Virus record (IMG/VR): IMGVR_UViG_3300044796_000662
Coordinates: 186,001-250,000 of that record
Strand: one strand, 5' to 3'
Length of the DNA stretch: 64,000 nucleotides
Shown here: positions 15,187 to 63,666 of the stretch, piece by piece
Layout of the letters: each line of letters begins with the position of its first letter
How positions within the stretch are numbered: the first letter of the stretch is position 1
Program-made: the position numbers and the translations under genes
Notes under the pieces: generated by a model
The model's database searches: none
What the model was told of the DNA's origin: nothing
The model's input: only the letters and a program-made list of their open reading frames with translations

Positions 15187-15514
15187 GCCCGGACTCCGCG
15201 ATCGTCTCGAACGATACTTCGAACGCATGACGAGCGTGGACGGCCTTGTCGTAGGCTTCCTTCGCCATGTTGAGGGCGATCTCGACGTCCTGGAAGAGCG
15301 AGCGTCGGTTGGCTTCGGCCTTCGCTGCCGAGAAGTCTTCGTTGTTCCAGGTGTTGTCCGCCTGGCGCTGCACCGTCTCGACGAGGGCCTTGTCGAACTC
15401 GGGCACTTCCCCCTTCATGTACTGGAGGTAGTTGTGCAGGAGTCCGAGCACCTCAAGGGAAACACTCGGAGGGTCCTCGGGAGGACGATTGACGAGGTTG
15501 CTCATGGTGACCAT
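15086..15514 (-). CDS. Hypothetical protein (accessory, probably leaderless)
   Basis: CGGTGTAG motif 9 nt upstream of ATG; 3' end overlaps start of the giant gene. Confidence 0.6.
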   Translation of the reverse strand: MVTMSNLVNRPPEDPPSVSLEVLGLLHNYLQYMKGEVPEFDKALVETVQRQADNTWNNEDFSAAKAEANRRSLFQDVEIALNMAKEAYDKAVHARHAFEVSFETIAESGRGLRCAAVAAHLFVPHALAASFDGGLAAASDDR

Positions 15515-18051: not shown

Positions 18052-18164
18052 GGTGGTTCCTTCTCTGAGCCAGCGAGCGGCATAAAAGAAAGCGGGCGCT
18101 GCCCAACGTCAGTGGTTGCGAAACTTCGACAGAAGAGCGAGGGTCTGGAGGAGCGACTTGGCGC

Positions 18165-34832: not shown

Positions 34833-37800
34833 TCAGCCGAGCTTCTTGATGGTCTCCAGGAGCGGGCGGTATGCCTCGCGCAGGTGCGGGTTCGCCGCAG
34901 CCATCTTGATGACGGCGGAGCGGAGCTGGGTGTAGGACGCATCCTTCTGCTGTCCCTGACCCTGCTCATCCTTCTTCTCGCCGTCTTCCTTCTTGCCCTT
35001 CTGGTGCTCCAGGAACTCGGGCGGGAGCTGGGCCTGCTTCTGTTGCTGACCCTGCGACTCCTCTTGCTGCTCCTGCTCGGCGACCTTCATGGACAGATCG
35101 ACGAGGTCGTAGGCGACCACGGGGTTGCTGGACGCATACTTCGACGCGAACTGGCGGATGATGGCCGAGGGCTTCATGGGGTGTCCTTCTCCTGCTGTGG
35201 AGTGATAAAGAGACTCTGACGCCATCTTGGCGCCCGTATCGACTGTGATTGGACCCTTGATGTTGCTGCGGTCGGGCAGAAGAGCGTACGGATCCGACTC
35301 TCCCGTGAGCCGCGCGAGCAGCATGTTGTAGATCGGCGGCTGAAGGCCAACCGAGTACCGGCCGTTCTCGTGATCACGGATGGCCAGTTCCAGAGCCGCT
35401 CGAACCTGCGTCTCACGGTAGATGCCGTTCATCGCAGTCGAGAGGACGGGGGTCTTGAGCCACTCGCGGGCCGCCTTGACCAGGGAGTCGAAGTCCTTCT
35501 CCCCAAGGTCACGCTGGTGCACCTGAGTCCAGGGCACATACGGCGTGTTGACGGCCTTGTCCTTGGGGTACGGTTCAACGCCCCAGTAGACAGCCGCCTT
35601 TGCACGCTCCGCTACGCGGATGGAAAGCGAGTCGCCCATCGCCCAATGGGGCTTACAAGTAGAAACTCCGCTCACTCGGGCTACGACGCGCGCCAGAGTG
35701 GAGGCGGTCTTCAGGGCCGAATCCTGGTCCTTCAAGCGGTCGTAGAGCTGTTTGCGGGCGTCCTTCACATCTCCCGGCTCCCCGCGCGCCTGACCGTAGC
35801 CTGCCGGTCGTGGTGGGGGCTGGGGCAGATCCGCAGGTACGCCCTCACCCTGGCGGTAGGGGTCGCTGACGCGGTCCTTGTGCTTCTTGACGGCCTTGTC
35901 GTAGTCGTCGCCCCACTTCTTGAGCTTGTCCTCGTACTCGTCGTACTCCTTCTCCTTGATGTAGGAGTTGACGAAGGGGTACTTCTCCGGGGCCAGCGTG
36001 CGGATCTTGTCGAGGACGCGGTTGCGGAAGTTCTGCTTCGCCGGGATCTGCCCGCGCATCTCCTTCGGGTAGCGCTTGTCGGCCTTGTCGAAGAACTCGT
36101 CAATGCGCTTGAGGCCCTTGACGATCGCGCCCGGTGACTCGTGCTCCGAGATCGCGCTGGGCGAGTCATGGGAGAGGAACTCCTTCTGCGCACGAAGGTA
36201 GTCGTTGGCCTGCGCGTAGCCGACCGCAAGCCGCTGCGCTGCCGGATCGTCCTTGAGCTGATCGAGGAGCTTACCGATCTGCTTCTCGCTGATTTCCTTC
36301 GGCGCGGGGCGCTTGGGTAGCGCCTTGTCTTCGCTCTCGTCGTACTCCTCGCCGCGGTCCCTCGCCTCTTGGGTGTGCTGCTCAATCAGCATCTCCCTCT
36401 TGCGTTGCCAGCGAGCGTACTTGTCGGCGTCATCCTCCATGAGGCCACGCTCGACAGCATCCTTGAAGACGTGCTTGGCCATCGTGGTTGCGCGAGCATC
36501 ACGATCCTCAGGCGTCTCGTTCGGGTGCTTGCGAAGCATGAAGTCGGCGATGTGCCCCAGAAGCTCATCGGGGGCGTTCGTCTTCTTCCGGAGCTTGTCC
36601 ACCTGCTTCTCTCGGGCAGCAAGGCTCATCCCCAGAACGAACATGCGGTGCTTCTGCATCGCATCGGCCTTCTCGCCTTCGGACAGCTTCTCGAAAGGCA
36701 CTTCCTCGCCGTAGCGGTTCAGTCCCTTGGCGGGCGGGCGGACCTTCTCCGGATCCGTCTCGTAGTGTCCCTCGACGGCCTTGATCAGGCTGTCGCCACT
36801 CTTCTCCCCCATCGCCATCGAATGCGTTTCCACGAGGTCACGCACATCGTCCGGGTGAAGCGGGGGATCAGACTCAAGCAGGCGCTCGGCAACATCCGCC
36901 GGCATCGTCTCGATGATCTGACGCTTGGCCTTGTCCTGCTCCTCAGGGGTGACCTCACGCCGACTTGGTTGCGGAGGCAGGTGGTGCATCTCCGCGGCCG
37001 CCGCGAGCAAGTCTCCTACGGTCTTGACGCCAGGGGGAAGGTCGGCATCCCGCAGCTCGGGGATCGACTTCTTGATGCTCTGGTACTCCAGCCTGCCACC
37101 CTGCTCCTTGAGACGCTCGCGCAGGTCGCTATGGGGGTTCGCCAGATCCTTCAAGGTTCGCGAGAGTTCGGGATTCGTGACCGCCTTCTCACGCAGACCC
37201 TTGAGGTTCTCGTTGATGGCTTTGGACCGCTGGAAGCGCTCCACCCAATCGGCCTGCGCACGTGGGGGGAGGCTCTCGAAGGGAACGTGCTTCTTTTTCT
37301 TCTCGTCCGGGTAGAGCATCTCCCCGGAGTCGTCGCGGACGGTGCTGGAGTCCTCGTCCGCCCAGTCCTGAAACTCGGGCGTCTTGTGCTTCTGTCCCTT
37401 GATGAACTCGGCGGTGGCCGCCTCTTCCTCGGAAGGCTTGACCTTCGGGCGCTCGGACTTCTCGTCCTTCTTCTTGCCCTTCGGCTTCTCTTCCGGCGGA
37501 GGCTCGGCGATGGTCTTGAGACCCTCGGCAAGCTGCTCCTCCGAAGGCTTTCCAGCCGGCGCGGGCTGCTCCTTCGCTGCCGGCATCGGCTGCGTCGGCA
37601 TGGGCTGCGTCTTCGGCGTCGGGCGAGGGACAGGGGGCTTGGCAGCGGGCGGAGCCCCTGGCTTGGCACCTGGGGCCTGTCCTGCGGGAGCCTGACCGGG
37701 AGCCGCCTGAGGAGGGGCCTTGGGCGTAGGACGTGGGACAGGGGGCCGCGCCGGCTTCGCTTCTGCGGCCGGAGGCTTGCCCTCTTCCTTCTTGGGTTCC

Positions 37801-38876
37801 GCCTTCGGCTCGGAGAGCTTGAGGGCGTTCATGAAGTCGCCAACGGTCTTGACGTTCTTCGGGAAGATGCCCCGCAGATGCTTGGCGATCTCCTCGCCGG
37901 GGCTCATCTTCTGGCGCAGACGTGCGAACGAAGCAGGGTCCGCCGAGTCGAACTGGTGAATGAACGTCCCCACGGCGGGGTCGTTCTTGGCCATCTCGCG
38001 AAGCTGCTTGCCGGACTCGGCGAGTTCGCCTTCCTTGGTCGGCTCAAGAGGGGGGCCGCCTGTCGGACCCTCACCCTTCGGCGCCTCTGCCGGCTTGCCC
38101 TCACCCTTCGCGGGTTCCGGCTTTTCGTTCTTCGGCTCGGCCTCGTCCTCTTCCTTCCAGCGCGCCTTGAGCTTCTCCTCGACCTTGTCAAGCTGCTTGG
38201 TCGCATTGATGGCCTGACGAAGGTCACCCATGGTCTTGAACGGCTTGAAGGCAGGATTCTTCTCGGTGTCGATGAGGGCCTTCGGCATCCGATCGAGCGG
38301 GATCTCGTTGCCCCACCCACGCAGCTCGCTCTTCGGGTCGATGAGCGACTTCGTGAAGGACTGGAGCGCCAGGTCGTCGTCGATGGCGTCCTTCAAGCCG
38401 TGAAGCGCCTGGAGCTTCTGCTCCTCCTTCTTGCGCTTCTCGTGCTTGGGCTCCCCCGACTCGGGCTTCTTGGCACCGGGCTCCCCAGGCTTCTCGACCT
38501 TGGGCTCTTCAGGCGCACCCCCCGCATCCTCCTCGCCTTCCTTCACGGGCTCGTAGTCGCGCCCGTTCTCGCTCTGGAGGAAGTCCTTCGTGACCTCGCG
38601 GGTCTGCCCCGTCTCCCGGTGACGGACCTTGACCTTCGGAGACTCCTCGGCCCACCGAGTGAAGGCCCGGCCGAGCACACGGGCCACTATCGAGGCGGCA
38701 GCGGCGTCCTTGTCGTGCTTCTCAGGCTCGTCGTCCACTTCGATCCGCTCACGCCGCAAGTCTTTGCGCGGCGGCTTGACCTTGGGCGAGGGACGAATGA
38801 GACGCTCGGTCTCTTCCGTCTCCCGCTCGAAGTGGTCCTTTGTTGAGCGGATCTCCACGCTCAGCCCACGCCACAA
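34833..38876 (-). CDS. Large charged protein downstream of portal (putative internal head/core protein)
   Basis: 1347-aa ORF, K/E/P-rich, internal repeats; start may be GTG 38858. Confidence 0.75.
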   Translation of the reverse strand: MWRGLSVEIRSTKDHFERETEETERLIRPSPKVKPPRKDLRRERIEVDDEPEKHDKDAAAASIVARVLGRAFTRWAEESPKVKVRHRETGQTREVTKDFLQSENGRDYEPVKEGEEDAGGAPEEPKVEKPGEPGAKKPESGEPKHEKRKKEEQKLQALHGLKDAIDDDLALQSFTKSLIDPKSELRGWGNEIPLDRMPKALIDTEKNPAFKPFKTMGDLRQAINATKQLDKVEEKLKARWKEEDEAEPKNEKPEPAKGEGKPAEAPKGEGPTGGPPLEPTKEGELAESGKQLREMAKNDPAVGTFIHQFDSADPASFARLRQKMSPGEEIAKHLRGIFPKNVKTVGDFMNALKLSEPKAEPKKEEGKPPAAEAKPARPPVPRPTPKAPPQAAPGQAPAGQAPGAKPGAPPAAKPPVPRPTPKTQPMPTQPMPAAKEQPAPAGKPSEEQLAEGLKTIAEPPPEEKPKGKKKDEKSERPKVKPSEEEAATAEFIKGQKHKTPEFQDWADEDSSTVRDDSGEMLYPDEKKKKHVPFESLPPRAQADWVERFQRSKAINENLKGLREKAVTNPELSRTLKDLANPHSDLRERLKEQGGRLEYQSIKKSIPELRDADLPPGVKTVGDLLAAAAEMHHLPPQPSRREVTPEEQDKAKRQIIETMPADVAERLLESDPPLHPDDVRDLVETHSMAMGEKSGDSLIKAVEGHYETDPEKVRPPAKGLNRYGEEVPFEKLSEGEKADAMQKHRMFVLGMSLAAREKQVDKLRKKTNAPDELLGHIADFMLRKHPNETPEDRDARATTMAKHVFKDAVERGLMEDDADKYARWQRKREMLIEQHTQEARDRGEEYDESEDKALPKRPAPKEISEKQIGKLLDQLKDDPAAQRLAVGYAQANDYLRAQKEFLSHDSPSAISEHESPGAIVKGLKRIDEFFDKADKRYPKEMRGQIPAKQNFRNRVLDKIRTLAPEKYPFVNSYIKEKEYDEYEDKLKKWGDDYDKAVKKHKDRVSDPYRQGEGVPADLPQPPPRPAGYGQARGEPGDVKDARKQLYDRLKDQDSALKTASTLARVVARVSGVSTCKPHWAMGDSLSIRVAERAKAAVYWGVEPYPKDKAVNTPYVPWTQVHQRDLGEKDFDSLVKAAREWLKTPVLSTAMNGIYRETQVRAALELAIRDHENGRYSVGLQPPIYNMLLARLTGESDPYALLPDRSNIKGPITVDTGAKMASESLYHSTAGEGHPMKPSAIIRQFASKYASSNPVVAYDLVDLSMKVAEQEQQEESQGQQQKQAQLPPEFLEHQKGKKEDGEKKDEQGQGQQKDASYTQLRSAVIKMAAANPHLREAYRPLLETIKKLG

Positions 38877-50571: not shown

Positions 50572-51471
50572 TCAGGTGACAGTCAGAGTGACCGACAGGT
50601 CTTGGTAGGAGTTGCTAGAGAAGCCGCTGACCCGGAGCGTCTCCGTGTACGTGCCCGGCTGAAGGTTGCAGGACGTGGACACTGCGACCGACACGTTGAC
50701 CGCACCGCTCGAAGCGATGGTGCCAGACGACGGCGTGAAGCTGGTCAGCCAGGGCGACAGCCCAATGAGCTTCTGCACCTGGAAGTTGAGGATCGAACCC
50801 GCGGGCCCCGTGTTCTGCACCTGGAAGGTCTGTGCGGGGATGGGGACAGGCGGATTGCTGAACGCGATCCCGTTGAACGAGAGCGCCGTGGGAGACAGGG
50901 TGATCGTCGCTTGCGGTAGAACCGTGATCGTGACCGGGATGGTCTGGGGGTTGTTCGTCGCGTTCACGTCTTGGATGGTGACAGTCGCCGTGTAGGGGCT
51001 GTTGAGTGCAAGCAGGTCAGTCCCATCCACGGACACGTTGGTCATGCCCGAGGCGCCGAAGGCGATACCGCCCATGTTCGCCGGCGTCGCCTGCAAGTAG
51101 TCCGCTGACGTGGTCACGGAGGGGGACAGGAGCGAGCCGTACACGCCACTGTTCGTGACCGTGATGATCTGGGGCGTTCCGAACCCCTGCCCCTGCGTCG
51201 TCGTGAACGCAAGCGAAGTCGGCGCTGCCACGATGAGCGGAGCGAACGCCGATTGCAGCTCCGTGATGCTGTTGCCCATGGCCGTGACCACCGGGCCGGG
51301 CAACGGGATGTTGTCCCGAAGCAGCCCGAACGGGCTCACGATGTCCCGGACTTGAAAGGACACCACCGCCCTCGACACGTCAACGCGTGTCGTCCACCGC
51401 CACGTCCCCTGAGGAACCTGGATGGCGTACTGGTAGTCCTGAGTCTGTAGGTTGGACGCGAGGCTCGGCAC
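50572..51471 (-). CDS. BACON/Ig-like domain virion protein
   Basis: Two repeats of PTxLxF...Q...V.N.G..GS.L...W/YL...P..G. Confidence 0.75.
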   Translation of the reverse strand: MPSLASNLQTQDYQYAIQVPQGTWRWTTRVDVSRAVVSFQVRDIVSPFGLLRDNIPLPGPVVTAMGNSITELQSAFAPLIVAAPTSLAFTTTQGQGFGTPQIITVTNSGVYGSLLSPSVTTSADYLQATPANMGGIAFGASGMTNVSVDGTDLLALNSPYTATVTIQDVNATNNPQTIPVTITVLPQATITLSPTALSFNGIAFSNPPVPIPAQTFQVQNTGPAGSILNFQVQKLIGLSPWLTSFTPSSGTIASSGAVNVSVAVSTSCNLQPGTYTETLRVSGFSSNSYQDLSVTLTVT

Positions 51472-51530
51472 TGTATGGACGCTCCGGTGCTCACGGAACG
51501 TGGCCGATAAAAGAAACCGCGCCGGTTCGG

Positions 51531-51749
51531 CTAGTTGGGCCGGGTCGGAAAGACCTGTTTGGCCACAAAACGCGACAAACCGTCGAGGCGATGCATCGCC
51601 CGAAAAAGCCGGTGACGCACGCGACCCTGCGTCAGCCCCAGGGCGGCGGCTGCCGCCTTGATGGGGTAGGGCTCGTTCCGACTTCTCATCTCATCCAGGG
51701 TCCGAAGGATCTGGACGTCCATGTCGTCGATGATGTCAGAGGACTTCAT
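51531..51749 (-). CDS. Small HTH protein (copy of second HTH of upstream gene)
   Basis: Start MKSSD 51749; DVQIL...AAALGLTQGRVRHRLFRA. Confidence 0.7.
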   Translation of the reverse strand: MKSSDIIDDMDVQILRTLDEMRSRNEPYPIKAAAAALGLTQGRVRHRLFRAMHRLDGLSRFVAKQVFPTRPN

Positions 51750-52371
51750 CACCGCCACGATTGGCCCACTGGGGGAGTTTGACCTCGCGGAGGATGTTGA
51801 AGCGCTTCGAGCTGATCGCGTTGAAGACCTTGTGGTACGGGATGAACTTCCCATCCTTGGCGGCGGCGTCCTTGAGGGTCTTGACCGCCTTGAAGAAGCG
51901 GTGTCTCACGCGCCCCTGTGTGAGCCCCAGGCGGCTGGCCACCTCACTCTGGCAGGTCGTCTGCCACATGCCGATGAGGATGTCCACGTCGATGTCCTTG
52001 AAGACTTCGGGCAGATCGCGCCGCAAGTCCTCTTCGGTCACGGGCGGGATGCTGAGCAGGAACTTGATGCGCTGCAAGCCTCGATCGAGTCGATAGCTGA
52101 TCGCAGCCTGCGTCACCCCGAAGATCTCGGCGATGTCCGCCTGACGCTTCTTCTGGATGTAGTAGAGCTGGATGAGATCCGCCTCCCTTTGGGGGATGCG
52201 ATTGAGCAGAGGCATGATGCGGTCTTCGTAGTCCCCGTCTTGGAGGATCTTCTCGACCGTATCGTCCTCGGGCTCTTGTACCGGCTCTTCGTCGCTGTAG
52301 GGATCGTCGTTGGTGGCAAAGCGGTTGGCGAGTTCGGACGGGTCAACCGGAATCACGTAGCCGATGGTCAT
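51736..52371 (-). CDS. Tandem sigma70 region-4-like HTH protein
   Basis: LNRIPQREADLIQLYY....QADIAEIFGVTQAAISYRLDRG and QSEVASRLGLTQGRVRHR; ATG 52371 with GAGGGA SD. Confidence 0.8.
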   Translation of the reverse strand: MTIGYVIPVDPSELANRFATNDDPYSDEEPVQEPEDDTVEKILQDGDYEDRIMPLLNRIPQREADLIQLYYIQKKRQADIAEIFGVTQAAISYRLDRGLQRIKFLLSIPPVTEEDLRRDLPEVFKDIDVDILIGMWQTTCQSEVASRLGLTQGRVRHRFFKAVKTLKDAAAKDGKFIPYHKVFNAISSKRFNILREVKLPQWANRGGDEVL

Positions 52372-52408
52372 GTGGGTTCCCTCACGCGCGGGCTGCGCGG
52401 TTGCGGCT

Positions 52409-54385
52409 TCACCGAGCGCGTTCGTTGAAGAACACGGCCAGGATAGGCTCGGCCTGTACATCCACATCTGTGAGTCGCTCAGCGGCGACCTTCTGATCTG
52501 GGTTTGGCACGACCTCCGTGAGGGGAACGTCCCGGAGGGTCATGATGTCGAGGTTCAAACGAACCTGTGCTTCAGCGTCCCGGAGGCACTGATAGCGGAG
52601 CTTAGTCAAGCCTGCCAGATTCGAGGCGTAGATGCCATCTATGGTTCCGTAGAGCTGGACCAACCCCAGAAGCACCTTCTGTGGAACGGTCGGAACCCCA
52701 GGCAGGTTGTCTGACGAATCCCCAAGCAGTGCGCGAAGAGTCACGATCTGTGACGGCCCCACACCCCACTCCTGCGTCAGTGCGTCGATGTCGTACAGCA
52801 CTTCCTTTCGCTTACCTTGTGCCGGCGTCAGTAGACGGTCGGTCTCTGTCACGAGCTGTAGAAGGTCACGGTCCGAGGAGAGGACCACGTTGTTCTGGCC
52901 CTTCAAGGTGCCACGCAGGAGGCTTGCGATGGCATCGTCGGCCTCCTCCCCCTCGTTGTAGAGCTGTGTAACCCCCAGAATCGGGAGCACCTCGCGCAGC
53001 CAGGCCACCTGGTCCCAGCGCACGCCCCCTGTCTCTTCTTCCGCGAAGCCGCTCGAACGGTTGGCCTTGTAATCGGCGTACTTGGCCTTGCGGGTTCGAT
53101 TCGAGCCATCCCAGACCACGTAGATGCTGGCCCCTGGGAACCGCTTGAGCAGGCTTGCGGTCGAGCGCAGAAAGCCGAAGAGCACGCCCGTGTGCCTCTG
53201 TTGCGTGTCCCGCATGTCCGACATGCCGGGCGCGTAGAAGCAGCGATAGGCGAGGTTGAAACCGTCGATGATGACGTTCTGGACTTCCACGCTGGTCTCC
53301 TCAATCTCGCGCTCGATCTCCGAGACGTCGTCTGACAGGTTGTCCAGGCTCTCTTGCAAGTCCTGCAACGTGAGCCACTTGAAGTACCGTCCCTCGATCT
53401 CCGAGAAGGGCGTCTCGACGAGGCTCTCGCGGACAAGGGGTACGAGACCGTCCCAACGCTGTGTGAGACCATCAAGCAGGATCGCTCGGTCCCCTTGCTC
53501 CTTGAGCTTGCTCGCATCGAGGGGGATGTAGAACGACCGAACGAGGTTGGAGCGATGCTCCAGCCCCTCAGCCCAGTCGTTCAGTTGCGTATAGACGTCG
53601 AGTCTCGGACGTATCCGGGTGATGAGCGTGGGCGCGGTAAGTGCTGTCTGGATGGTCGTGAAACTCTCGACCTTGGACACCCAAGACTGGAACTGGAGAT
53701 ACTCCTGGTAGTGCTTGTTCAGGCGCGCGAAGCCGACGAGCTTTGGGGCCTTGAGCAGATCGTAGAAGTCGTTGAACCAGTCACGGACGCCTGCGAAGCG
53801 GTCCATGGCCGGAGCCTTGGGCGCCTTGGAGACGAGCCGGAGGAAGCTCCGGGGCAGCGTGATGATCGAGTCCTTGGAGCGTAGAAGAACCCGTACCTGG
53901 ACCTTGTCCTCTTCGGGAATCTCCTCGATGACCTTCGCCTGGATCTGGCGATAGGCCCCTGAGGTGATGAGAACCGTGTCGTCGATACCGATCCCCTGGT
54001 CGGTCTCGACATGGATCTGCCGCTTCATCTTGTCGATGGCGGAGTTCTCGACGAAGGCTAGCTGCCGGACAGGACGCCCCCCGTTCTCGGGTCGGACGAT
54101 CTTCGTGAGCACCTTCTGGACGTACTTGGAGTTGTCCAGTCTGTTGTAAAGCGTATCGGGGTGCTTGTGCCGAATGAACGCGTAGCCATCGACGAGGTAG
54201 TGCACTACCCGGTCCTCACCGATCTGCGTGACCGCAGCCGGAATGAACACTTCGGCGCCCTTCACTGCGTAGGTGATGGAACGCCGGACGATGTCCGGGT
54301 CCTCCCCTTCGGCCTTGGAACTCAGTTCCAAGATGACCCACTGGTTGGGATCGCTCGTCACAACGACTACGCCCTCCTGGGCCAT
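52409..54385 (-). CDS. NusG (NGN+KOW) fused to Pol I-type 5'-3' exonuclease/flap endonuclease
   Basis: N-term WVIL...EVFIP...LVDGYAFI...V.ITSGAY....AKV.E; C-term IIDGFNLAYR, VVWDG, YKANR, EADD, SSDRDLLQL, GDSSDNLPGV. Confidence 0.85.
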   Translation of the reverse strand: MAQEGVVVVTSDPNQWVILELSSKAEGEDPDIVRRSITYAVKGAEVFIPAAVTQIGEDRVVHYLVDGYAFIRHKHPDTLYNRLDNSKYVQKVLTKIVRPENGGRPVRQLAFVENSAIDKMKRQIHVETDQGIGIDDTVLITSGAYRQIQAKVIEEIPEEDKVQVRVLLRSKDSIITLPRSFLRLVSKAPKAPAMDRFAGVRDWFNDFYDLLKAPKLVGFARLNKHYQEYLQFQSWVSKVESFTTIQTALTAPTLITRIRPRLDVYTQLNDWAEGLEHRSNLVRSFYIPLDASKLKEQGDRAILLDGLTQRWDGLVPLVRESLVETPFSEIEGRYFKWLTLQDLQESLDNLSDDVSEIEREIEETSVEVQNVIIDGFNLAYRCFYAPGMSDMRDTQQRHTGVLFGFLRSTASLLKRFPGASIYVVWDGSNRTRKAKYADYKANRSSGFAEEETGGVRWDQVAWLREVLPILGVTQLYNEGEEADDAIASLLRGTLKGQNNVVLSSDRDLLQLVTETDRLLTPAQGKRKEVLYDIDALTQEWGVGPSQIVTLRALLGDSSDNLPGVPTVPQKVLLGLVQLYGTIDGIYASNLAGLTKLRYQCLRDAEAQVRLNLDIMTLRDVPLTEVVPNPDQKVAAERLTDVDVQAEPILAVFFNERAR

Positions 54386-55860
54386 GTGCGCTCGAATTCC
54401 CGTCGCCAGTCTTCCGGCGTCAGAATGCGATTCATCTCGTCCTCTGTTCCTTGATGGAAGGACAGCGGAACGTCAATGTTGCCTGGGTTGGAACGGCTCC
54501 GAGGCCGCCCCAACGGCACAGCCTTGTGGTCTTCGGAGGTGAGAGCGTAAGGGTCCCCTGAGCCGATAGCTCCGATGCCGTCCGCCCGCATCTTGCCGTT
54601 GCCCCCATTGGTTGCCGCGTGGACGATGGGGACTTGGGGTGCCGGAGAGGGGGAGGGTGGCGCCGCCGTTGTCACGGGAGACGGTGCAGACACCGGCTGT
54701 GACACCGCAGGAGGCGTTGAGGGGGTAGCTTGAACCGCTGCGGTCTGAACAGGGACCGAAGCGACGGCCATGGGTGCAGACACGGACAGCACAAGAGGCT
54801 GCGCCCCCATCTGTTGGGGAACGGCGCCGTTGGACTGCGCGAGGCTCACGATGTCGCAGACAAGGCTGATCCGCGACACTGCCCGATGCCGAAGGAAGTA
54901 TTCGGCCAGCTTGGTGCACCCCGTGGTGAACCGCTGGTAGACCTGCTCGGCCAGTTGCCGGTCCACGTACACGAAGTCGGCCGCCATGTTGTTGGCAAGC
55001 CGGAACGAGTTCATGGCCGCCTCGGCAAGACCTGCGGCCACCTGGTCAGCGGGCACTCGCTCGCATGCCTGGTCCACGAGTTCGAGAGCCTGCTTGGGGT
55101 TCCCGAGCGCAAGGAGGATCTGGTAGTACGTCGAGACGACACTGAGGTGTAGGTACTCTCGAACAGACTCGACCGTGACCGACCCCATCTGGGCGATCAT
55201 CTCCAGCTTGTTCAAGATGTCCCGGACGTGCCCGCCCGAGTGATCGATCACGATCAACACCGCGTCGTCTTGGTACTCGACCTTCTCGGTTTCGAGCACC
55301 ATTCGCATCCGCCCGAGCACGTCCTCACGAGTGACCTTACGGATCGGGTACGTCTCGCAGCGGCTCTGGATGGTCCCGCGGATGTTCTGAGGCTCGGTCG
55401 TACAGAAGATACCGAGGAGCTTCTTCTCCTCGATGGGCTTGAGCAGGACGTCCTGAGCCTCCTTGCTCATCCGGTGCGCCTCGTCGAAGAGGTAGATGCG
55501 GATGGGCGCCCCCATGGGCGGCATGTACGGGAGGTCTTCGAGCAGGTCACGGACGTTGGCAACGCCGCCGTTACTAGCCGCGTCGCGCTCCGTGAAGGCA
55601 CTGGGCTGGTCCTCCAGAATCGCGAGGCACTGCTCGCAGACGTTGCAGGGCTCCCACTCCTCACGGTTCAAGTTCTGACAGAGGGCCGCCCTCGCCAGCA
55701 CACGGGCAAGGGTGGTCTTGCCCTGCCCGTGACCGCCCGCGAAGATGTAGGACGTGTTCAGGATGGTCCCGTTCCTCAAGCGAGCCTTGATGAGCTGGAC
55801 GGATCCCTCCTGACCGAGCACCTCGGAGAACTTGCGCGGGCGGTACTTAGTGTCCCACAT
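54367..55860 (-). CDS. dnaX: DNA polymerase III gamma/tau-like clamp loader subunit
   Basis: KYRPRKFSEVLGQ, GGHGQGKTT, C..PCNVCEQC Zn module, DEAH, SRC, Pro-rich C-terminal linker. Confidence 0.92.
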   Translation of the reverse strand: MWDTKYRPRKFSEVLGQEGSVQLIKARLRNGTILNTSYIFAGGHGQGKTTLARVLARAALCQNLNREEWEPCNVCEQCLAILEDQPSAFTERDAASNGGVANVRDLLEDLPYMPPMGAPIRIYLFDEAHRMSKEAQDVLLKPIEEKKLLGIFCTTEPQNIRGTIQSRCETYPIRKVTREDVLGRMRMVLETEKVEYQDDAVLIVIDHSGGHVRDILNKLEMIAQMGSVTVESVREYLHLSVVSTYYQILLALGNPKQALELVDQACERVPADQVAAGLAEAAMNSFRLANNMAADFVYVDRQLAEQVYQRFTTGCTKLAEYFLRHRAVSRISLVCDIVSLAQSNGAVPQQMGAQPLVLSVSAPMAVASVPVQTAAVQATPSTPPAVSQPVSAPSPVTTAAPPSPSPAPQVPIVHAATNGGNGKMRADGIGAIGSGDPYALTSEDHKAVPLGRPRSRSNPGNIDVPLSFHQGTEDEMNRILTPEDWRREFERTWPRRA

Positions 55861-57726: not shown

Positions 57727-58293
57727 TCACTCCTCGACGATGGGCAGCGACGGCTTGGACTGAACAGGCTCCCACGGAGGTAGAAGCTTCTCCGGGTCCT
57801 CCGGCTGGCTCAAGGGTTCGACCTGGATGCGCAGGAGCTTGTACCAGAGGCGCTTCCACCAGGGGATGTCCGGCACCTGCATCTTGTTGATCGCCCATAG
57901 CAACCCGTAGACCTCGGGCATGTTGACCCTGAGCCAGTCCGGATCCTTGAGCTGTTGCGCGAAGTCGTTCCAGATCGTCTTCTTGTTGGCCTTGGGGTTG
58001 AAGTACGGGCAGCGCTGAGCGTCGATGGGCTCCTCGCAAATCGTACCCGGCCAGTCCTCGACGCTTGAGGCGCCGAGCATGCAAAGACCCATCGACGGCG
58101 TTCCAGGGGACGTCCCGATGCGGTTGTAGTTCTCGTTGACCTCGCCCGCGATGCGCTTGCGCACGTCCAGCGGGTGCCGATAGTTGTGCGTACAGAGGTG
58201 CGGGAGCCGGTGCTCCGCGAGCTTCACTCTGGCGGTCAGCTCTTCTACGAGCAGAAACCTGATCCGCGCTTCGATCTCGGTTGCATCTCTCAT
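57727..58293 (-). CDS. Cys-rich hypothetical protein
   Basis: CTHN...C...C...CPYF; ATGA-coupled. Confidence 0.7.
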   Translation of the reverse strand: MRDATEIEARIRFLLVEELTARVKLAEHRLPHLCTHNYRHPLDVRKRIAGEVNENYNRIGTSPGTPSMGLCMLGASSVEDWPGTICEEPIDAQRCPYFNPKANKKTIWNDFAQQLKDPDWLRVNMPEVYGLLWAINKMQVPDIPWWKRLWYKLLRIQVEPLSQPEDPEKLLPPWEPVQSKPSLPIVEE

Positions 58294-58952
58294 TTGGGTC
58301 CTCGGAGCCGTTTCAGGCCCAGTGACCAGGTTGTATCAGAAGATTGCTCTTCGAAGCCCTGGTAGGCAGACTTCGCGTGGTCCAAGAACGCCTGGTTGTG
58401 CGTGACGAGAAGGATCGGGATGTTCGTCGTTTCCGACAACTTCCTGAGGAACTGGCCGGTCTGATCCACGTAGTAGTCACTGACGGCCGACAGAGTCTCA
58501 TCCAGGAACAGGACAGGGAACTTCTTGAGGCGCATGAGCGCCAAGAGCCGCAGCGTCAAAGACGCGATGCTCGACACACCACCGCCCGTTGTTTCTAGCG
58601 GCGGTCCGACGATCTCGATGTCGTTCTGCGTGCGCTTGACGAGCAGGTCGATGGAGACCTTCCCTCGGGACTGACCGACCTCAGCCTGAAAGGAGAGGTC
58701 GATGTCGAAGAAGATGGACTTGAGCCCCTCGGTCACGATGGACTCGATGGCCTTCACCTGGTCCATGACCAGCTTGTCCATGAGCAGGCGAAGAAGCTCC
58801 CCTGTTTTGGAGAGCTTCTCCACCCGCTCGGACAACACCGTGATCTCCCTCGCCGTCTTGTCCCGCTGCTGGACAAGGGAGTCCCTCCGCGTCTGAACAC
58901 GGGTCGCGGAGGTCTTGAGTGCTTCAACCCTGGTCTTCCAGGCGTCGGTCAC
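58290..58952 (-). CDS. sbcC: SbcC/Rad50 C-terminal half
   Basis: GTGA-coupled start 58952; coiled coil, signature-like TGGG, Walker B LFLDE, H-loop LVTH. Confidence 0.85.
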   Translation of the reverse strand: MTDAWKTRVEALKTSATRVQTRRDSLVQQRDKTAREITVLSERVEKLSKTGELLRLLMDKLVMDQVKAIESIVTEGLKSIFFDIDLSFQAEVGQSRGKVSIDLLVKRTQNDIEIVGPPLETTGGGVSSIASLTLRLLALMRLKKFPVLFLDETLSAVSDYYVDQTGQFLRKLSETTNIPILLVTHNQAFLDHAKSAYQGFEEQSSDTTWSLGLKRLRGPK

Positions 58953-60259
58953 TCGTACGACGGCATGAACCGAGTCACCGTGCATGAGATTGCTCCTGCC
59001 GGAACCTGCCCTCCCTCGGGCAGTTCACCGGCCACCGTCTTGCCCTCGGCATCGAGGTAGAACCTGTCGATGGTCCGGAGGTAGGCGCCACCCTTGGGGC
59101 GCTTCTCGCTCGGGTCGATCGGGTAGACCCGAAGCTCGACGGTGCCACCCTCGGCGTCCTTGAACAGCGAGAGGAGCTGCTTGCGGTTGATGAACGGCTC
59201 CAGGGTACGGTCGGGCTCCGCCAGCGACGAGTCCTTGCCGACGCTGATGAACATGCTCTTGATGCCCTTGGCGTTACCCTCGGCCGCCTCCAACTGAAGA
59301 GTGTTGGAGTCCTTGTTCCAGAGGAGCCGCACCTTGTCGTGCTTGTCCCCCAGCTCCTCGCCCATGTAGCCGAGCGCGTCGATCATCTCGGCCTTGGGGA
59401 TCTTGAAGACGAACTTGTCGCCGCCGAGCCCGTAGTACGAGTGCTTGGCGTGCAGCTTCGTGGTGTGCGTCCAGCCGAAGACCCGGCTTTCCGACTCGTC
59501 GCAGACGAAGGTCTTCGTGTCCGTAGACTTGATGACCGCCGTCCCCTCGATCTTGCCGAGGAAGCTGAGAAGCAGACCGAGATGCTCGGCCTTGAGCGCG
59601 AAGCTCTTGCCCTTGAACGCCTCGCAGTCGAAGTAGAACGCCTGCGAACCGTTGGCAGCGTAGAGCACGCCGTCACCCTTCTCGTAGGGCTTGATCATCT
59701 GACCCTTGTTCTTCGGGTCCTCGACCTCCGCGTCCTTGTCGAACATCTGGATGGTCTTGTGCTGATCCTCGGCACGGGGATTGTTCTCCCCGTGGAAGTC
59801 CTTGGACAGACTGAGAGCCTTGCGAAGGACGGCGGCGGGGAACTTGCCGGTCTCCTTGGCGGCCTTCAGCTCCTTGTCGAAGGTAGCCAGCCACTTCGGG
59901 TCGAAGGCGGGGCGGGTGCCGCCGGCCCCACGCCCGGGGTCGTAGCTGACGCTGAACTGGTCGCCATCCCTCTTGGACTCGAAGCTGATCGGGCCCGAGA
60001 AATACTTGAACGCCCCGATCGATTCGTACGGGTAGGCGAAGACGCCCTCACCATCCGCGTCGAAGATGTCCATGCGTGCCCGAGCGACATGGTTCGCGTC
60101 GGCCGAGTACATGTACCCCTCGGTCGAGTTGCGGATGTAGAAGAGGAAGCCCGTGTCCCTCTCCTTGTTGCACGCCCTGGGGACCACCGTCTGAACGGCG
60201 TCGATCGCGGCGTTCAGGTGGGCGGCTTGCACTGAGAACTTGATCATGTTCATCCTCAT
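58949..60259 (-). CDS. dnaN: DNA polymerase III beta sliding clamp-like protein
   Basis: IKFSV....L..AI..V..VVP start, three-domain periodicity (LYAANG, FINRKQLLSL), size and context near DnaX. Confidence 0.65.
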   Translation of the reverse strand: MRMNMIKFSVQAAHLNAAIDAVQTVVPRACNKERDTGFLFYIRNSTEGYMYSADANHVARARMDIFDADGEGVFAYPYESIGAFKYFSGPISFESKRDGDQFSVSYDPGRGAGGTRPAFDPKWLATFDKELKAAKETGKFPAAVLRKALSLSKDFHGENNPRAEDQHKTIQMFDKDAEVEDPKNKGQMIKPYEKGDGVLYAANGSQAFYFDCEAFKGKSFALKAEHLGLLLSFLGKIEGTAVIKSTDTKTFVCDESESRVFGWTHTTKLHAKHSYYGLGGDKFVFKIPKAEMIDALGYMGEELGDKHDKVRLLWNKDSNTLQLEAAEGNAKGIKSMFISVGKDSSLAEPDRTLEPFINRKQLLSLFKDAEGGTVELRVYPIDPSEKRPKGGAYLRTIDRFYLDAEGKTVAGELPEGGQVPAGAISCTVTRFMPSYE

Positions 60260-62421: not shown

Positions 62422-63666
62422 TCAGGCCAGCTTCCTCTCCTCGTGGCTGTGCCCGATCTTGACGGGCTGTGCGCACGAAGGACAGAAAGGCAGGGACTTG
62501 ATCTCTCCTACCAGTACCTTCTCGTCAGCGAGAGTCTTGTCGTAGTTGTTCTCCAGGTTCGAGATGGTCTCTTCGAGCGAGGCCATTCTCGACGCGAACG
62601 ACGAGAGCTGGAGGAGTCGATCCCTGGCCACCTTGAGGCCCGTGGGGTCCGGCGTCGTGACGTTCTCGACCCCCTTGAACTTGACCCACTGATCCTGCAA
62701 GCTCTGGAGCTTGTTCGTCCAGGTCGAGAGCTTCTCGAACTTGTCCGCGGCAGCGACGACAGGAGCGGCGATCGGCGTCGGGATGGTCTCGACACCCATG
62801 AGCGACTTCACAGCCGTCGCGCGATCGATCACATCGGACTGGTAGCGGGAGAGCTTCTCGAACTCACTGCGCTTGGCCAGCACTGCGTCGATGGTGGGGA
62901 CTGGCGTTTCGACAGCCTTCTTCAGGGTATCGACGCGGAAGCCGATCGCTCGCAGTTCCTCGATGTAGGAGTCGAGAGACTCGACTGCCTCCTGAACGAC
63001 GGTGATCTGCCCGAGCTTCTTCTCGACCGCGACGACTCCCGCCACGGCCTCGTCGAGGCCCTCGTACTCGTTGATCTGATGCGTTAGCTCGGTCATGTCC
63101 TTCTCCCGGACCTTCCTTGTGGAGACGGCCTCTTTGCGGTCCTTCTCGACGAACCTCATCGCGACGTTGATGCGGTCAAGATGGGCAACGTCGGAGAACA
63201 CGTCAGCGACAACTCCGCCCGACTGGTCGAGCAAGAAGATGTTGTCGAACTGGTCAGCGATCTGGAGCAGCTTGGCGTTGGGCCCGATCTGCACCATCCC
63301 GAAGTCCTTGGCGAGCTTGGGCCTCTCCAAGAAGTCCGGGGTCCCTCTGTTGGGGACCCCGTAGTCCTGACCGTTGAACGTGTAGCTGTTGCGCTTGTCC
63401 CCCTTCTCCCACTTGAGGTCGAAGCCCTCCGTGCGGAGGTGCACCGAGCAGTAGCATTCGCAGGTCTTGGACCCGCGCAGACGCCTATGACAGGCGACAC
63501 CATGACGGACGAACGAGGTCCCAGTCGCGCCCGTGAGGGCCGCGCGAACGGCCCTCACGATGGCGCTCTTGCCGATGTCGGACTTCCCGACGAGGGCGGT
63601 GAACCCGTCGATGTTGATCGAGACGTGCTCGATCGATTGGAAGTTCCGGACCTCTACGTCGATCAT
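62422..63666 (-). CDS. sbcC: SbcC/Rad50 N-terminal half
   Basis: VRNFQS, Walker A GKSDIGKS, Q-loop, coiled coil ending in CPSC hook. Confidence 0.88.
   Translation of the reverse strand: MIDVEVRNFQSIEHVSINIDGFTALVGKSDIGKSAIVRAVRAALTGATGTSFVRHGVACHRRLRGSKTCECYCSVHLRTEGFDLKWEKGDKRNSYTFNGQDYGVPNRGTPDFLERPKLAKDFGMVQIGPNAKLLQIADQFDNIFLLDQSGGVVADVFSDVAHLDRINVAMRFVEKDRKEAVSTRKVREKDMTELTHQINEYEGLDEAVAGVVAVEKKLGQITVVQEAVESLDSYIEELRAIGFRVDTLKKAVETPVPTIDAVLAKRSEFEKLSRYQSDVIDRATAVKSLMGVETIPTPIAAPVVAAADKFEKLSTWTNKLQSLQDQWVKFKGVENVTTPDPTGLKVARDRLLQLSSFASRMASLEETISNLENNYDKTLADEKVLVGEIKSLPFCPSCAQPVKIGHSHEERKLA

Follow-up and report, generated by a model that had tools for sequence, protein, structure and literature searches.

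A predicted NusG-like module fused to a Pol I-type flap nuclease in a clade of huge environmental phages

A clade of very large environmental phages joins a copy of NusG, the universal RNA-polymerase-riding factor, to an intact DNA-replication flap nuclease in one protein. This conserved architecture appears to be undescribed and suggests a physical link between late transcription and DNA replication. The fusion was first seen in a 64,000-nt stretch of IMG/VR record IMGVR_UViG_3300044796_000662 (positions 186,001 to 250,000), referred to below as the window. The observation made in the preliminary description, namely a single ORF combining NGN and KOW domains, a helical spacer of about 175 aa, and an intact 5' nuclease, is correct. 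Its interpretation, however, is only partly supported, since the architectural claim is strengthened by conservation, while all proposed functions remain inferred.

Results

Domain organization

The ORF encodes 658 aa in three parts (Table 1). As for the N-terminal part, the single sequence gives only weak profile hits (TIGR00922, E 3e-4), with LoaP and a PHROG "transcription antiterminator" among the best families. A family profile, in contrast, hits solved NusG (2lq8) with an E-value of 1.5e-8 across both NGN and KOW domains, and the conserved G-Y-x-F strand aligns with F-P-G-Y-V-F of T. maritima NusG. The AF2 model has pLDDT >90 over residues 11-190, and all 50 top Foldseek PDB hits are NusG, RfaH, or Spt5, several of them RNAP-bound, aligned over ~180-190 columns. 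The KOW motif (G-x-V-x-I-x-x-G-P-[FY] in the superfamily) is represented by G-D-T-V-L-I-T-S-G-A-Y; Pfam KOW is detected in 35 of 41 family members, and PDB hits restricted to KOW include 1nz9 and 2mi6. However, the module scores far below the curated cutoffs of housekeeping NusG (TIGR00922, 20.5 bits against 135.7) and LoaP (NF033641, 18.4 against 125), and Pfam NusG is not hit by the window protein itself. It is therefore a distinct, phage-specific paralogue family, together with at least 69 stand-alone clusters.

The C-terminal part matches both Pfam domains of Pol I-type 5' nucleases (PF02739 and PF01367), with 103.7 bits against a cutoff of 34.3 for 5_3_exonuc_N and 50.1 against 40 for 5_3_exonuc (H3TH). 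Foldseek reports M. smegmatis FenA, ExoIX, Taq, and T5 D15 with E-values down to 6e-17, Taq being aligned over 295 columns. Residues D374, D426, E481, D483, D484, D505, D507, D556, and D559 align one-to-one with Taq D18, D67, E117, D119, D120, D142, D144, D188, and D191, respectively, and all nine are invariant in 41 homologues. Identity to the FENs of SPO1-like phages is 31-37%. Scores are, however, far below the equivalog cutoffs for DNA polymerase I (TIGR00593, 167 against 600, with only model positions 2-250 of 890 matched), Xni/ExoIX (NF007017, 78 against 261), and 5'-3' exonuclease. The H3TH glycine loop is replaced by R-V-P in most members. No XRN_N hit was found in Pfam.

The helical arm between these parts is predicted with pLDDT of 50-87. 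It is always present and recognizable (E-values from 1e-26 to 1e-52), although it is the least conserved part. Searches for structural and feature analogues returned none above TM 0.5 or score 0.6. A search among 1.84 billion representatives gave only 69 hits, which, apart from a few judged to be repeat noise, are the fusion itself and SbcC-like ATPases. Pairwise BLASTP of the arm against the SbcC-like protein is not significant, and only the profile-level match holds.

Table 1. Features of the fusion gene and its neighbours, in window coordinates.
Feature	Position	Strand	Description and support
NusG-linker-FEN ORF	52409..54385	-	658 aa; ATG start; stop codon TGA at 52411-52409
NGN domain	54002..54346	-	Residues ~14-128; family signature W-V-V-L-E-L and invariant G67-Y68-A69-F70
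KOW domain	53816..54001	-	Residues ~129-190; motif G-D-T-V-x-I-x-S-G-x-Y, then invariant S170-K171 and P178-R179; beta barrel in the AF2 model
Helical arm	53291..53815	-	Residues 191-365; five long predicted helices, invariant W203, repeated L-x-x-W motifs; 27% column identity; length ~130 to 208 aa across the family
Pol I-type 5' nuclease (FEN)	52412..53290	-	Residues 366-658; PIN-like domain 371-541, H3TH domain 542-622; nine carboxylates and YKANR arch motif
Candidate internal translation start	53288..53302	-	GAGGAG (53302-53297), 6 nt, GTG (53290-53288, V366); would give a ~33-kDa FEN-only product
Alternative N-terminal start	54359..54378	-	AGGAGG (54378-54373) and GTG (54361-54359), just after the dnaX stop (54369-54367)
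DnaX-like clamp-loader ATPase	54367..55860	-	Pfam DNA_pol3_delta2 and TIGR02397; 3' end overlaps or abuts the start of the fusion; neighbour in every locus
Sigma-like protein	51736..52371	-	211 aa from ATG 52371; sigma region 4 plus a second HTH, no region 2 detected; invariant downstream partner of the NusG-like gene
Conserved element	51507..51518	-	G-G-TTTCTTTTAT, 35 nt upstream of the first structural gene (p299, GTG 51471)
Divergent Pol III beta sliding clamp (p436)	58949..60259	-	Same replication module; ESM Atlas feature score 0.95 and structural TM 0.73-0.84 to DnaN clusters

Two gene starts might differ from the initial ORF calls. The true start of the fusion may be GTG 54361 rather than ATG 54385, since homologues begin near residue 12-14 of the window protein, and the downstream sigma-like gene most likely starts at ATG 52371 rather than 52467.

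Conservation and single origin

The fusion is not a local accident. The ORF is supported by a DNA contig, an RNA-library contig spanning 50996-54753 with 0 differences, and a soil metagenome from another study with substitutions only, none of them having indels. In the metatranscriptome run the locus is found at flat depth in contigs of up to 80 kb; DNA carry-over cannot be excluded and no transcript ends could be read, so the RNA-library contig proves neither transcription nor particular protein forms.

More than 120 full-length homologues were found at 41-81% identity. At least 122 protein clusters (122 of 122 complete clade members) keep NGN-KOW, arm, and FEN in one ORF, as do 42 viral loci with the gene order primase, metallopeptidase, DnaX clamp loader, fusion, sigma-region-4 protein, and structural genes, as well as MAG contigs, which supports selection for the linkage. 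Thus, of the outcomes named beforehand as refuting, neither homologues encoded as separate genes with a stop lost only here nor an N-terminal domain lacking the NusG fold was observed. Related contigs come from peat, soil, and fresh water and range from a few kb (fragments) to ~620 kb, many being above 100 kb. A scan of genome contigs with the full alignment was dominated by the generic Pol I motif and returned only bacterial Pol I loci, giving no information on the host.

Sister phages, including a complete 485-kb genome, have a stand-alone 180-aa NusG-like gene in the same slot and no detectable FEN; in the complete relative neither a Pol I-type FEN nor the arm was detected anywhere. The nuclease is therefore a clade-specific gain added to the NusG gene, not a neighbour that merged. 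One free 180-aa homologue is that of LR745208. Fused and free modules remain colinear homologues (hhalign 99.9%). In a tree the fused NGN-KOW modules form one group with 100/100 support nested among stand-alone forms, with a very long stem (2.9 substitutions per site) and short internal branches, which means one event, remodelling, and then constraint. The long stem, however, could also mean that NGN-KOW changed partner after the fusion.

Genomic context

The gene lies between a replisome module (beta clamp, primase, and DnaX) and a sigma-like gene, followed by a conserved promoter-like element and the structural genes. All conserved genes of the window are on one strand. The DnaX, NusG-like, and sigma-like trio is conserved even in a 40%-GC phage and in the 485-kb genome, which supports the reading of the NusG-like module as a transcription factor. 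In one homologue (P0114/L139) the fusion and the sigma-like protein are read through into one ORF, but this triple fusion rests on a single 6-kb contig and is treated only as weak evidence. No canonical beta' motif of the D-F-D-G-D type was found in the window or in the 485-kb relative, so host RNAP is the likely target.

The conserved element has one copy on the coding strand 24-35 nt upstream of p299 in 28 related loci and is the only copy in 27 of them. It is absent from the stand-alone-NusG relative. A hairpin plus U-run after the sigma-like gene was considered as a conserved intrinsic terminator and rejected, since hairpins upstream of the conserved element are no better than shuffles (mean −6.8 against −5.8 kcal/mol; 8 of 22 strong). 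A k-mer search for a shared motif in all 11 coding-strand gaps of the window gave nothing convincing, and Rfam and tRNA scans of the window found nothing.

Internal translation start

The suggestion of a nuclease-only product, made in the preliminary description, gains support. An in-frame start codon is located at the domain boundary, 7-12 codons before the catalytic Asp, in 29 of 33 loci, against a background of 0.07 per codon, and ATG alone is found at position −7 in about 14 loci, against 1.5% per codon. SD-like pairing of −6 kcal/mol or better is present in about 15 of 33 loci (14% background). V and L at this site use GTG/TTG in every case, in contrast to 34% and 24% usage overall. A nuclease-only product is thus likely too.

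Comparison with known systems

Specialized NusG paralogues (RfaH, LoaP, UpxY, and TaA/ActX) are also two-domain NGN+KOW proteins divergent from housekeeping NusG. As with them, the gene is encoded next to the long operons it would serve, and a conserved short element sits in the promoter/leader of the putative target operon, reminiscent of ops-type recruitment sites, although only by analogy. The phage protein, however, is paired with a sigma-region-4 protein and carries a 470-aa C-terminal extension with an enzyme, whereas no NusG paralogue discussed in the family review has a catalytic domain (PMC7819879).

The Pol I 5' nuclease domain and stand-alone FENs (M. smegmatis FenA, E. coli ExoIX/Xni, T5 D15, and SPO1 gp32.85) share the fold, both Pfam domains, and the H3TH and arch motifs. 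The full set of nine carboxylates is present as in Pol I; ExoIX lacks some of them. In contrast, the fusion has no polymerase domain and is not free-standing.

In T4 (gp45-gp33-gp55) and Mu (C with the beta clamp), a replisome component is linked physically to the late-transcription apparatus, as would be the case here, and genes for clamp, clamp loader, and late factors are likewise clustered. There is no sequence relationship to gp33, gp55, or C, however, and the link here would be covalent, through a nuclease rather than through the clamp. Eukaryotic and archaeal Spt5 is an NGN-KOW factor on the polymerase that brings nucleic-acid-processing enzymes to the elongation complex, as the fusion would, but it recruits them non-covalently through KOW and CTR regions, and the nuclease here is Pol I-type, not XRN-type as in the Rat1/Xrn2 torpedo. 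As for lambda Q-type late antiterminators, the analogy is only positional: the regulator gene lies immediately upstream of the control region of the late operon, while the protein fold is unrelated and a hairpin before the conserved element is not consistently present.

No paper describing the fusion was found, which agrees with the earlier statement that no such protein was known, although the automatic annotation of JGI already names homologues "5'-3' exonuclease/transcription antitermination factor NusG".

Discussion

The explanation that appears to fit best, although tentatively, is that the gene encodes a bifunctional protein: a phage-specific NusG paralogue, in sister phages a free protein always encoded between the clamp loader and a sigma-region-4 factor, which in one lineage acquired, once, a helical arm and a complete Pol I-type 5' flap endo/exonuclease and has kept them as one polypeptide ever since. 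The fold (from models and profiles), motifs, conservation, single origin, and context are established by the analysis, whereas RNA polymerase binding, nuclease activity and its substrate, and the mechanism are inferred. In this view, the NGN domain, like all NusG-family proteins, would dock on the clamp of the host RNA polymerase while it transcribes the long, same-strand late operons of the phage. Binding to the clamp helices is inferred from the fold and from the conserved G-Y-x-F strand. The arm would let the tethered nuclease reach DNA next to the polymerase and remove 5' flaps and the RNA of RNA:DNA hybrids, meaning R-loops and transcripts left as primers when replisomes run into co-directional polymerases, so that heavily transcribed, replicating DNA stays intact and packageable. 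A second, nuclease-only product would probably serve ordinary Okazaki-primer removal. However, the arm varies in length and is poorly conserved, so it is not a precise ruler, and the conserved internal start shows that at least part of the work of the nuclease may need no tether. The choice of substrate (R-loop, mRNA primer, or flap) rests purely on what Pol I-type 5' nucleases do. Among the earlier functional suggestions, both R-loop removal at replication-transcription conflicts and coupling of late transcription to replicating DNA fit the context, and nothing computed decides between them, while torpedo-like termination or host mRNA destruction is the least compatible.

Two independent functions in one gene seem a less likely alternative. 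A NusG-like antiterminator and a replicative FEN would merely be co-expressed, the fusion fixing stoichiometry or timing with the clamp loader, the internal start supplying most of the working nuclease, and tethering having no mechanistic role. The conserved internal start, often with an SD, the variable arm, the tightly coupled or overlapping gene starts in the dnaX/fusion/sigma-like operon, and the fit of FEN to the adjacent replication module agree with this reading. Fusions of convenience, however, usually split again, and no fission was seen in 122 clusters or 42 loci down to 41% identity. Moreover, the arm with its invariant Trp is always present, and the burst of change exactly on the fusion branch suggests adaptation of NGN-KOW to the new partner.

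Replication-coupled late transcription in the manner of T4 gp45/gp33/gp55 or Mu C is also possible but somewhat more doubtful. The FEN domain would act mainly as a sensor or anchor for nicks, flaps, or the phage sliding clamp, and through NGN-KOW and the sigma-like partner would bring or activate RNA polymerase at the late operons, so that late genes fire only on replicating templates. Clamp-dependent late transcription has precedent in T4 (PMC2988020, PMC7892883) and Mu (PMC12867686), and the gene order and, weakly, the P0114 ORF are in line with it. In addition, the sigma-like protein lacks a detectable region 2, and NGN domains bind the same beta' clamp helices that region 2 uses (sigma contacts are summarized in PMC7892883). 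In contrast, the nine invariant carboxylates argue for catalysis, not mere binding, and sister phages manage with free NusG and no FEN. The conserved C-terminal I-L-x-A-F-F was considered as a PIP-like or beta-clamp motif, but it lies inside the region aligned to the normal nuclease fold of Taq and cannot be called a clamp motif.

A torpedo-like terminator, degrading nascent RNA 5'-3' to dislodge the polymerase, or a nuclease destroying host transcripts or DNA, is very unlikely. The FEN/PIN-like superfamily is distantly related to XRN nucleases, an RNAP-tethered nuclease could in principle reach the nascent RNA, and T5 and T7 5' nucleases contribute to host DNA breakdown. However, the domain scores as Pol I/FenA/ExoIX-type with an H3TH duplex-DNA-binding module, and such enzymes need a duplex junction rather than free single-stranded RNA. 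NusG-family factors mostly promote processivity, and the gene lies in the middle/late part of the genome, not among early takeover genes. An assembly or sequencing artefact is refuted by the independent assemblies and the hundreds of independent homologues sharing the architecture, and nothing was found in its favour.

In a broader reading, which is not excluded but remains less likely than not, the protein would be a new class of NusG-family effector, in which the elongation factor serves as a covalent tether carrying a replication/repair nuclease on the transcribing polymerase. It would give huge phages a built-in way to resolve RNA:DNA hybrids and transcription-replication collisions on long co-directional late operons or, alternatively, would license late transcription on replicating DNA. 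It may be loaded at the clade-specific G-TT(T/C)CTTTTAT element, which contains the TTNTTT motif that pro-pausing NusG proteins read on the non-template strand.

NusG/Spt5 is the only transcription factor conserved in all cellular life, and its known variants work by binding partners, not by carrying enzymes. The analysis also shows that huge environmental phages carry their own NusG paralogues, always paired with a sigma-region-4 protein, a module absent from the jumbo-phage and huge-phage surveys consulted. With one protein, separable domains, and sister phages having the unfused form as natural controls, the system offers a simple way of studying how R-loops, mRNA-primed replication restarts, or replication-coupled late gene expression are handled. 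A naturally selected, clade-wide fusion to an intact flap nuclease would be a direct physical link between the elongation complex and the replication/repair machinery.

Domain composition

The ATG-initiated ORF encodes 658 aa and combines 3 distinct parts. The C-terminal 290 residues are unambiguously a Pol I-type 5' nuclease: both Pfam domains score well above threshold, while partial hits to the Pol I and 5'-3' exonuclease NCBIfam models cover only the nuclease part. Foldseek also reports M. smegmatis FenA, ExoIX, Taq, and T5 D15, with E-values reaching 6e-17. All 9 active-site carboxylates correspond one-to-one with those of Taq Pol I and are invariant in 41 homologues. The canonical G-[IF]-G-x-K-T-A loop of the H3TH motif, however, is replaced by [RT]-V-P-x-K in most family members, and is canonical (G-F-G-L-K-T-A) in one subclade.

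In contrast, the N-terminal 190 residues taken as a single sequence give only weak NusG, LoaP, and antiterminator hits, and this module was therefore tested separately. A profile of 41 family members hits solved NusG proteins at 1.5e-8 across both NGN and KOW, with 29 of 41 members touching Pfam NusG and 35 of 41 touching KOW. An AlphaFold model of residues 1-368 (pLDDT above 90 for residues 11-190) returns NusG, RfaH, or Spt5 for every one of its 50 best PDB matches, several of them RNAP-bound. Between the two modules, residues 191-365 are modelled as 5 long helices of moderate confidence with no structural relatives (the arm). The observation made in the preliminary description, a NusG module, a helical spacer, and an intact 5' nuclease in one frame together with an internal GAGGAG-N6-GTG, is therefore right in every element. 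As for the N-terminus, the annotated ATG lies inside the 3' end of dnaX, and a GTG preceded by AGGAGG and placed 5 nt after the dnaX stop is an equally good start that fits the N-termini of the homologues.

Positions of the features discussed in the text (window coordinates unless a contig is named)
Feature	Position	Strand	Remark
NusG-arm-FEN ORF	52409-54385	-	658 aa
Alternative start of the ORF	54359-54385	-	GTG at 54361
Candidate internal start, GAGGAG-N6-GTG	53302-53288
H3TH loop of the FEN domain	~52700-52740	-
RNA-library contig spanning the locus	50996-54753
Sigma-like protein	ATG 52371		211 aa
ORF following the sigma-like gene	51531-51722	-	63 aa
Conserved element	51507-51518	-	35 nt before the first structural gene
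Second occurrence of the element	18082-18091	-	in another gap
Predicted beta sliding clamp, p436	58949-60259	-	436 aa
ATPase matching the C-terminal part of SMC_N	58290-58985	-	231 aa
SbcC-like protein, p414	62422-63666	-	arm-related residues 209-375 (62542-63042)
Giant ORFs without Pfam family	6907-15228 and 34833-38876	-	2773 and 1347 aa
Orthologue of p414	L125:714-1952
ORF of protein P0114	L139:934-3456		840 aa, on a 6-kb contig
Enlarged terminase-like and SbcD-like genes	L125:19478-21935 and L126:870-3077		intein and LAGLIDADG domains

Conservation and genomic context

The locus is spanned by a DNA contig of 63 kb and by an RNA-library contig, both of which match without any difference, while a soil metagenome from a different study carries the gene with point substitutions only. 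The protein search found more than 120 full-length homologues at 41-81% identity. Of the 192 related proteins gathered, 122 have NGN-KOW, arm, and FEN, a further 69 have NGN-KOW only, and 1 is a contig-end fragment. In 42 IMG/VR loci the fusion is one ORF in a fixed gene order: beta clamp (p436), ATPase, 2 unknowns, Toprim primase, metallopeptidase, DnaX clamp loader, the fusion, sigma-like protein, and the proteins p299, p127, p584, and p667. The terminase, identified separately, lies further downstream in the window. The same order occurs in MAG contigs of 421 and 452 kb. One 6-kb contig (L139) carries an ORF, P0114, in which the NusG-arm-FEN protein reads through in frame into the sigma-like protein, but since it rests on a single contig, it could be either a real triple fusion or an error.

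The window is part of a 363-kb IMG/VR contig (L081), and related contigs range from a few kb (fragments) to 620 kb, many above 100 kb, from samples of peat, soil, lake, and other waters. The only GenBank phage with a related N-terminal module is LR745208.1, a 485-kb uncultured phage that shares the gene order from primase to terminase (terminase E 3e-179). Most structural proteins have no Pfam family, 2 giant ORFs have none at all, and most of the structural module is unannotatable. Scans of the window for tRNA and Rfam elements returned none. No canonical beta' catalytic motif occurs in the window or in the 485-kb relative, which, together with the sigma-like gene, points to use of host RNA polymerase.

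As for the replication genes, p436 has no Pfam or PHROG hit but is a divergent Pol III beta sliding clamp according to language-model features and predicted structure (TM 0.73-0.84). The SbcC-like protein p414 matches only the N-terminal Walker-A part of SMC/AAA_23 models, whereas the 231-aa ATPase located 3.4 kb downstream matches only the C-terminal part of SMC_N (positions 136-215 of 220), and the two may represent a split Rad50/SbcC-type ATPase. Relatives also have greatly enlarged dnaX (904-924 aa in the related loci L094, L107, and L109), terminase-like (L125), and SbcD-like (L126) genes. Intein and LAGLIDADG domains were detected in the latter two, and inteins seem common in the replication and packaging genes of this lineage.

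Evolution of the fusion

Three more distant phages, L123, L124 (the latter only 40% GC), and LR745208, carry a complete but free NGN-KOW protein of 172-207 aa in exactly the same slot between DnaX and the sigma-like gene, and at least 69 clusters of this free form exist. When the whole of LR745208 was searched with HMMs built from the fusion family, the NGN-KOW gene was found once, while neither the FEN nor the arm was found anywhere. A maximum-likelihood tree of the NGN-KOW module (62 fused and 71 free forms) puts all fused forms on one side of a 100/100-supported branch of length 2.9, nested among free forms, and the two profiles remain colinear homologues at 29% identity.

Thus, the ancestral state is a free phage NusG paralogue paired with a sigma-like protein. 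The arm and nuclease were added once, the NusG module changed markedly at that moment, and the composite has since been under constraint. This is the opposite of the scenario that had been named in advance as refuting the fusion, in which homologues are always separate genes and a stop codon is lost only here.

The helical arm

A profile of the arm searched against 1.84 billion representative proteins finds only 69 proteins. Most of these are the fusion family, and about a dozen are proteins of 400-520 aa, of which the 4 that were checked have an SbcC/Rad50-type Walker-A head followed by a coiled coil. That group includes p414 and its orthologue in the related locus L125. In this exhaustive search the arm occurs almost nowhere else. 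None of 500 residue-shuffled versions of the p414 segment gave a hit; pairwise BLASTP, however, is not significant, and the relationship holds at profile level. The arm is thus a lineage-restricted helical module related to the coiled coil of the phage's SbcC-like ATPase, with which it shares repeated L-x-x-W helices. Its length varies from ~130 to 208 aa, and it has one invariant Trp.

A possible nuclease-only product

In-frame start codons just before the catalytic Asp were examined in 33 non-identical loci. ATG, GTG, or TTG is present at position -7 or -8 in 21 of 33 loci (background 0.07 start codons per codon), and ATG at -10 to -12 in 8 further loci (background for ATG 1.5% per codon). 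V or L at the site is encoded by GTG/TTG in every case, compared with 34% and 24% overall usage, respectively, and anti-SD pairing of -6 kcal/mol or better is observed in about 15 of 33 loci (background 14%). Related sequences are not independent, and these values are therefore not formal probabilities. The pattern nevertheless argues that many members also make free FEN, as the preliminary description had suggested.

Regulatory context

Gene junctions from dnaX through the fusion to the sigma-like gene are overlapping or very short. The sigma-like protein matches only sigma region 4, plus a second HTH. It is followed by a 63-aa ORF found only in this phage, whose helix-turn-helix nearly copies the C-terminal HTH of the sigma-like protein; in relatives, this ORF matches only the sigma-like protein itself.

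Then follows a short non-coding stretch with the element G-G-TTTCTTTTAT, which is invariant in an alignment of loci whose proteins are 40-60% identical. The clade-wide form, G-x-TT(T/C)CTTTTAT, occurs in 28 fused-clade loci (among L083-L125), always on the coding strand and 24-35 nt upstream of p299, the first structural gene, even where extra genes separate p299 from the sigma-like gene. In 27 of these loci it is the only copy, while L107 has a second copy elsewhere. The element recurs once more in the window and is absent from LR745208, the 485-kb relative with free NusG. Hairpins in front of it are not consistently present, and it therefore looks like a promoter or recognition site rather than a terminator. 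Since it contains TTNTTT on the non-template strand, the motif reported for NusG-dependent pausing (10.1101/2022.10.28.514324), it is a candidate late promoter or NusG loading/pause site, although the motif is treated here only as a lead.

Comparison with known families

By fold and motifs the N-terminal module belongs to the NusG/Spt5 superfamily, but it fails the curated thresholds for housekeeping NusG and LoaP, and so represents a separate phage paralogue family. The C-terminal module belongs to the Pol I-type 5' nuclease family without being an equivalog of Pol I or Xni. Functionally, the nearest analogues are operon-specific NusG paralogues (RfaH, LoaP, and UpxY) and Spt5 as a recruitment platform; none of the NusG paralogues discussed in the family review, however, carries an enzyme. 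Full-text searches, although of an incomplete body of literature, found no paper on a NusG-nuclease fusion or on NusG in jumbo or huge phages, and two broad surveys of such phages do not mention NusG, Spt5, or KOW. JGI's pipeline already labels homologues with both COG names. The architecture is therefore visible in databases but apparently unstudied.

Functional interpretation

The analysis itself establishes the fold, the catalytic motifs, the single origin, the persistence of the linkage, the position at the junction between replisome and late genes, and the pairing with a sigma-like factor. RNA polymerase binding and nuclease activity, in contrast, are inferred from family knowledge, according to which NGN domains bind the beta' clamp helices of multisubunit RNA polymerases and travel with elongation complexes, and Pol I-type 5' nucleases cut 5' flaps and remove the RNA of RNA-primed DNA. 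The interpretation in the preliminary description is partly supported, while its functional ideas remain inferences.

Among the alternatives, two independent functions that merely share a gene appear unlikely but remain the strongest rival. Slightly less likely is a T4/Mu-like coupling, in which the nuclease domain would sense replicating DNA or the clamp and license late transcription, for which precedents exist (PMC2988020, PMC7892883, PMC12867686). A torpedo or host-destruction role fits the enzyme type poorly and is very unlikely.

The reading that seems most likely, although it remains tentative, is that the full-length protein places a flap/RNA-primer nuclease on polymerases transcribing the long same-strand late operons of replicating phage DNA, where it would clear RNA:DNA hybrids and flaps. 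The internally initiated product, in this view, would serve lagging-strand maturation.
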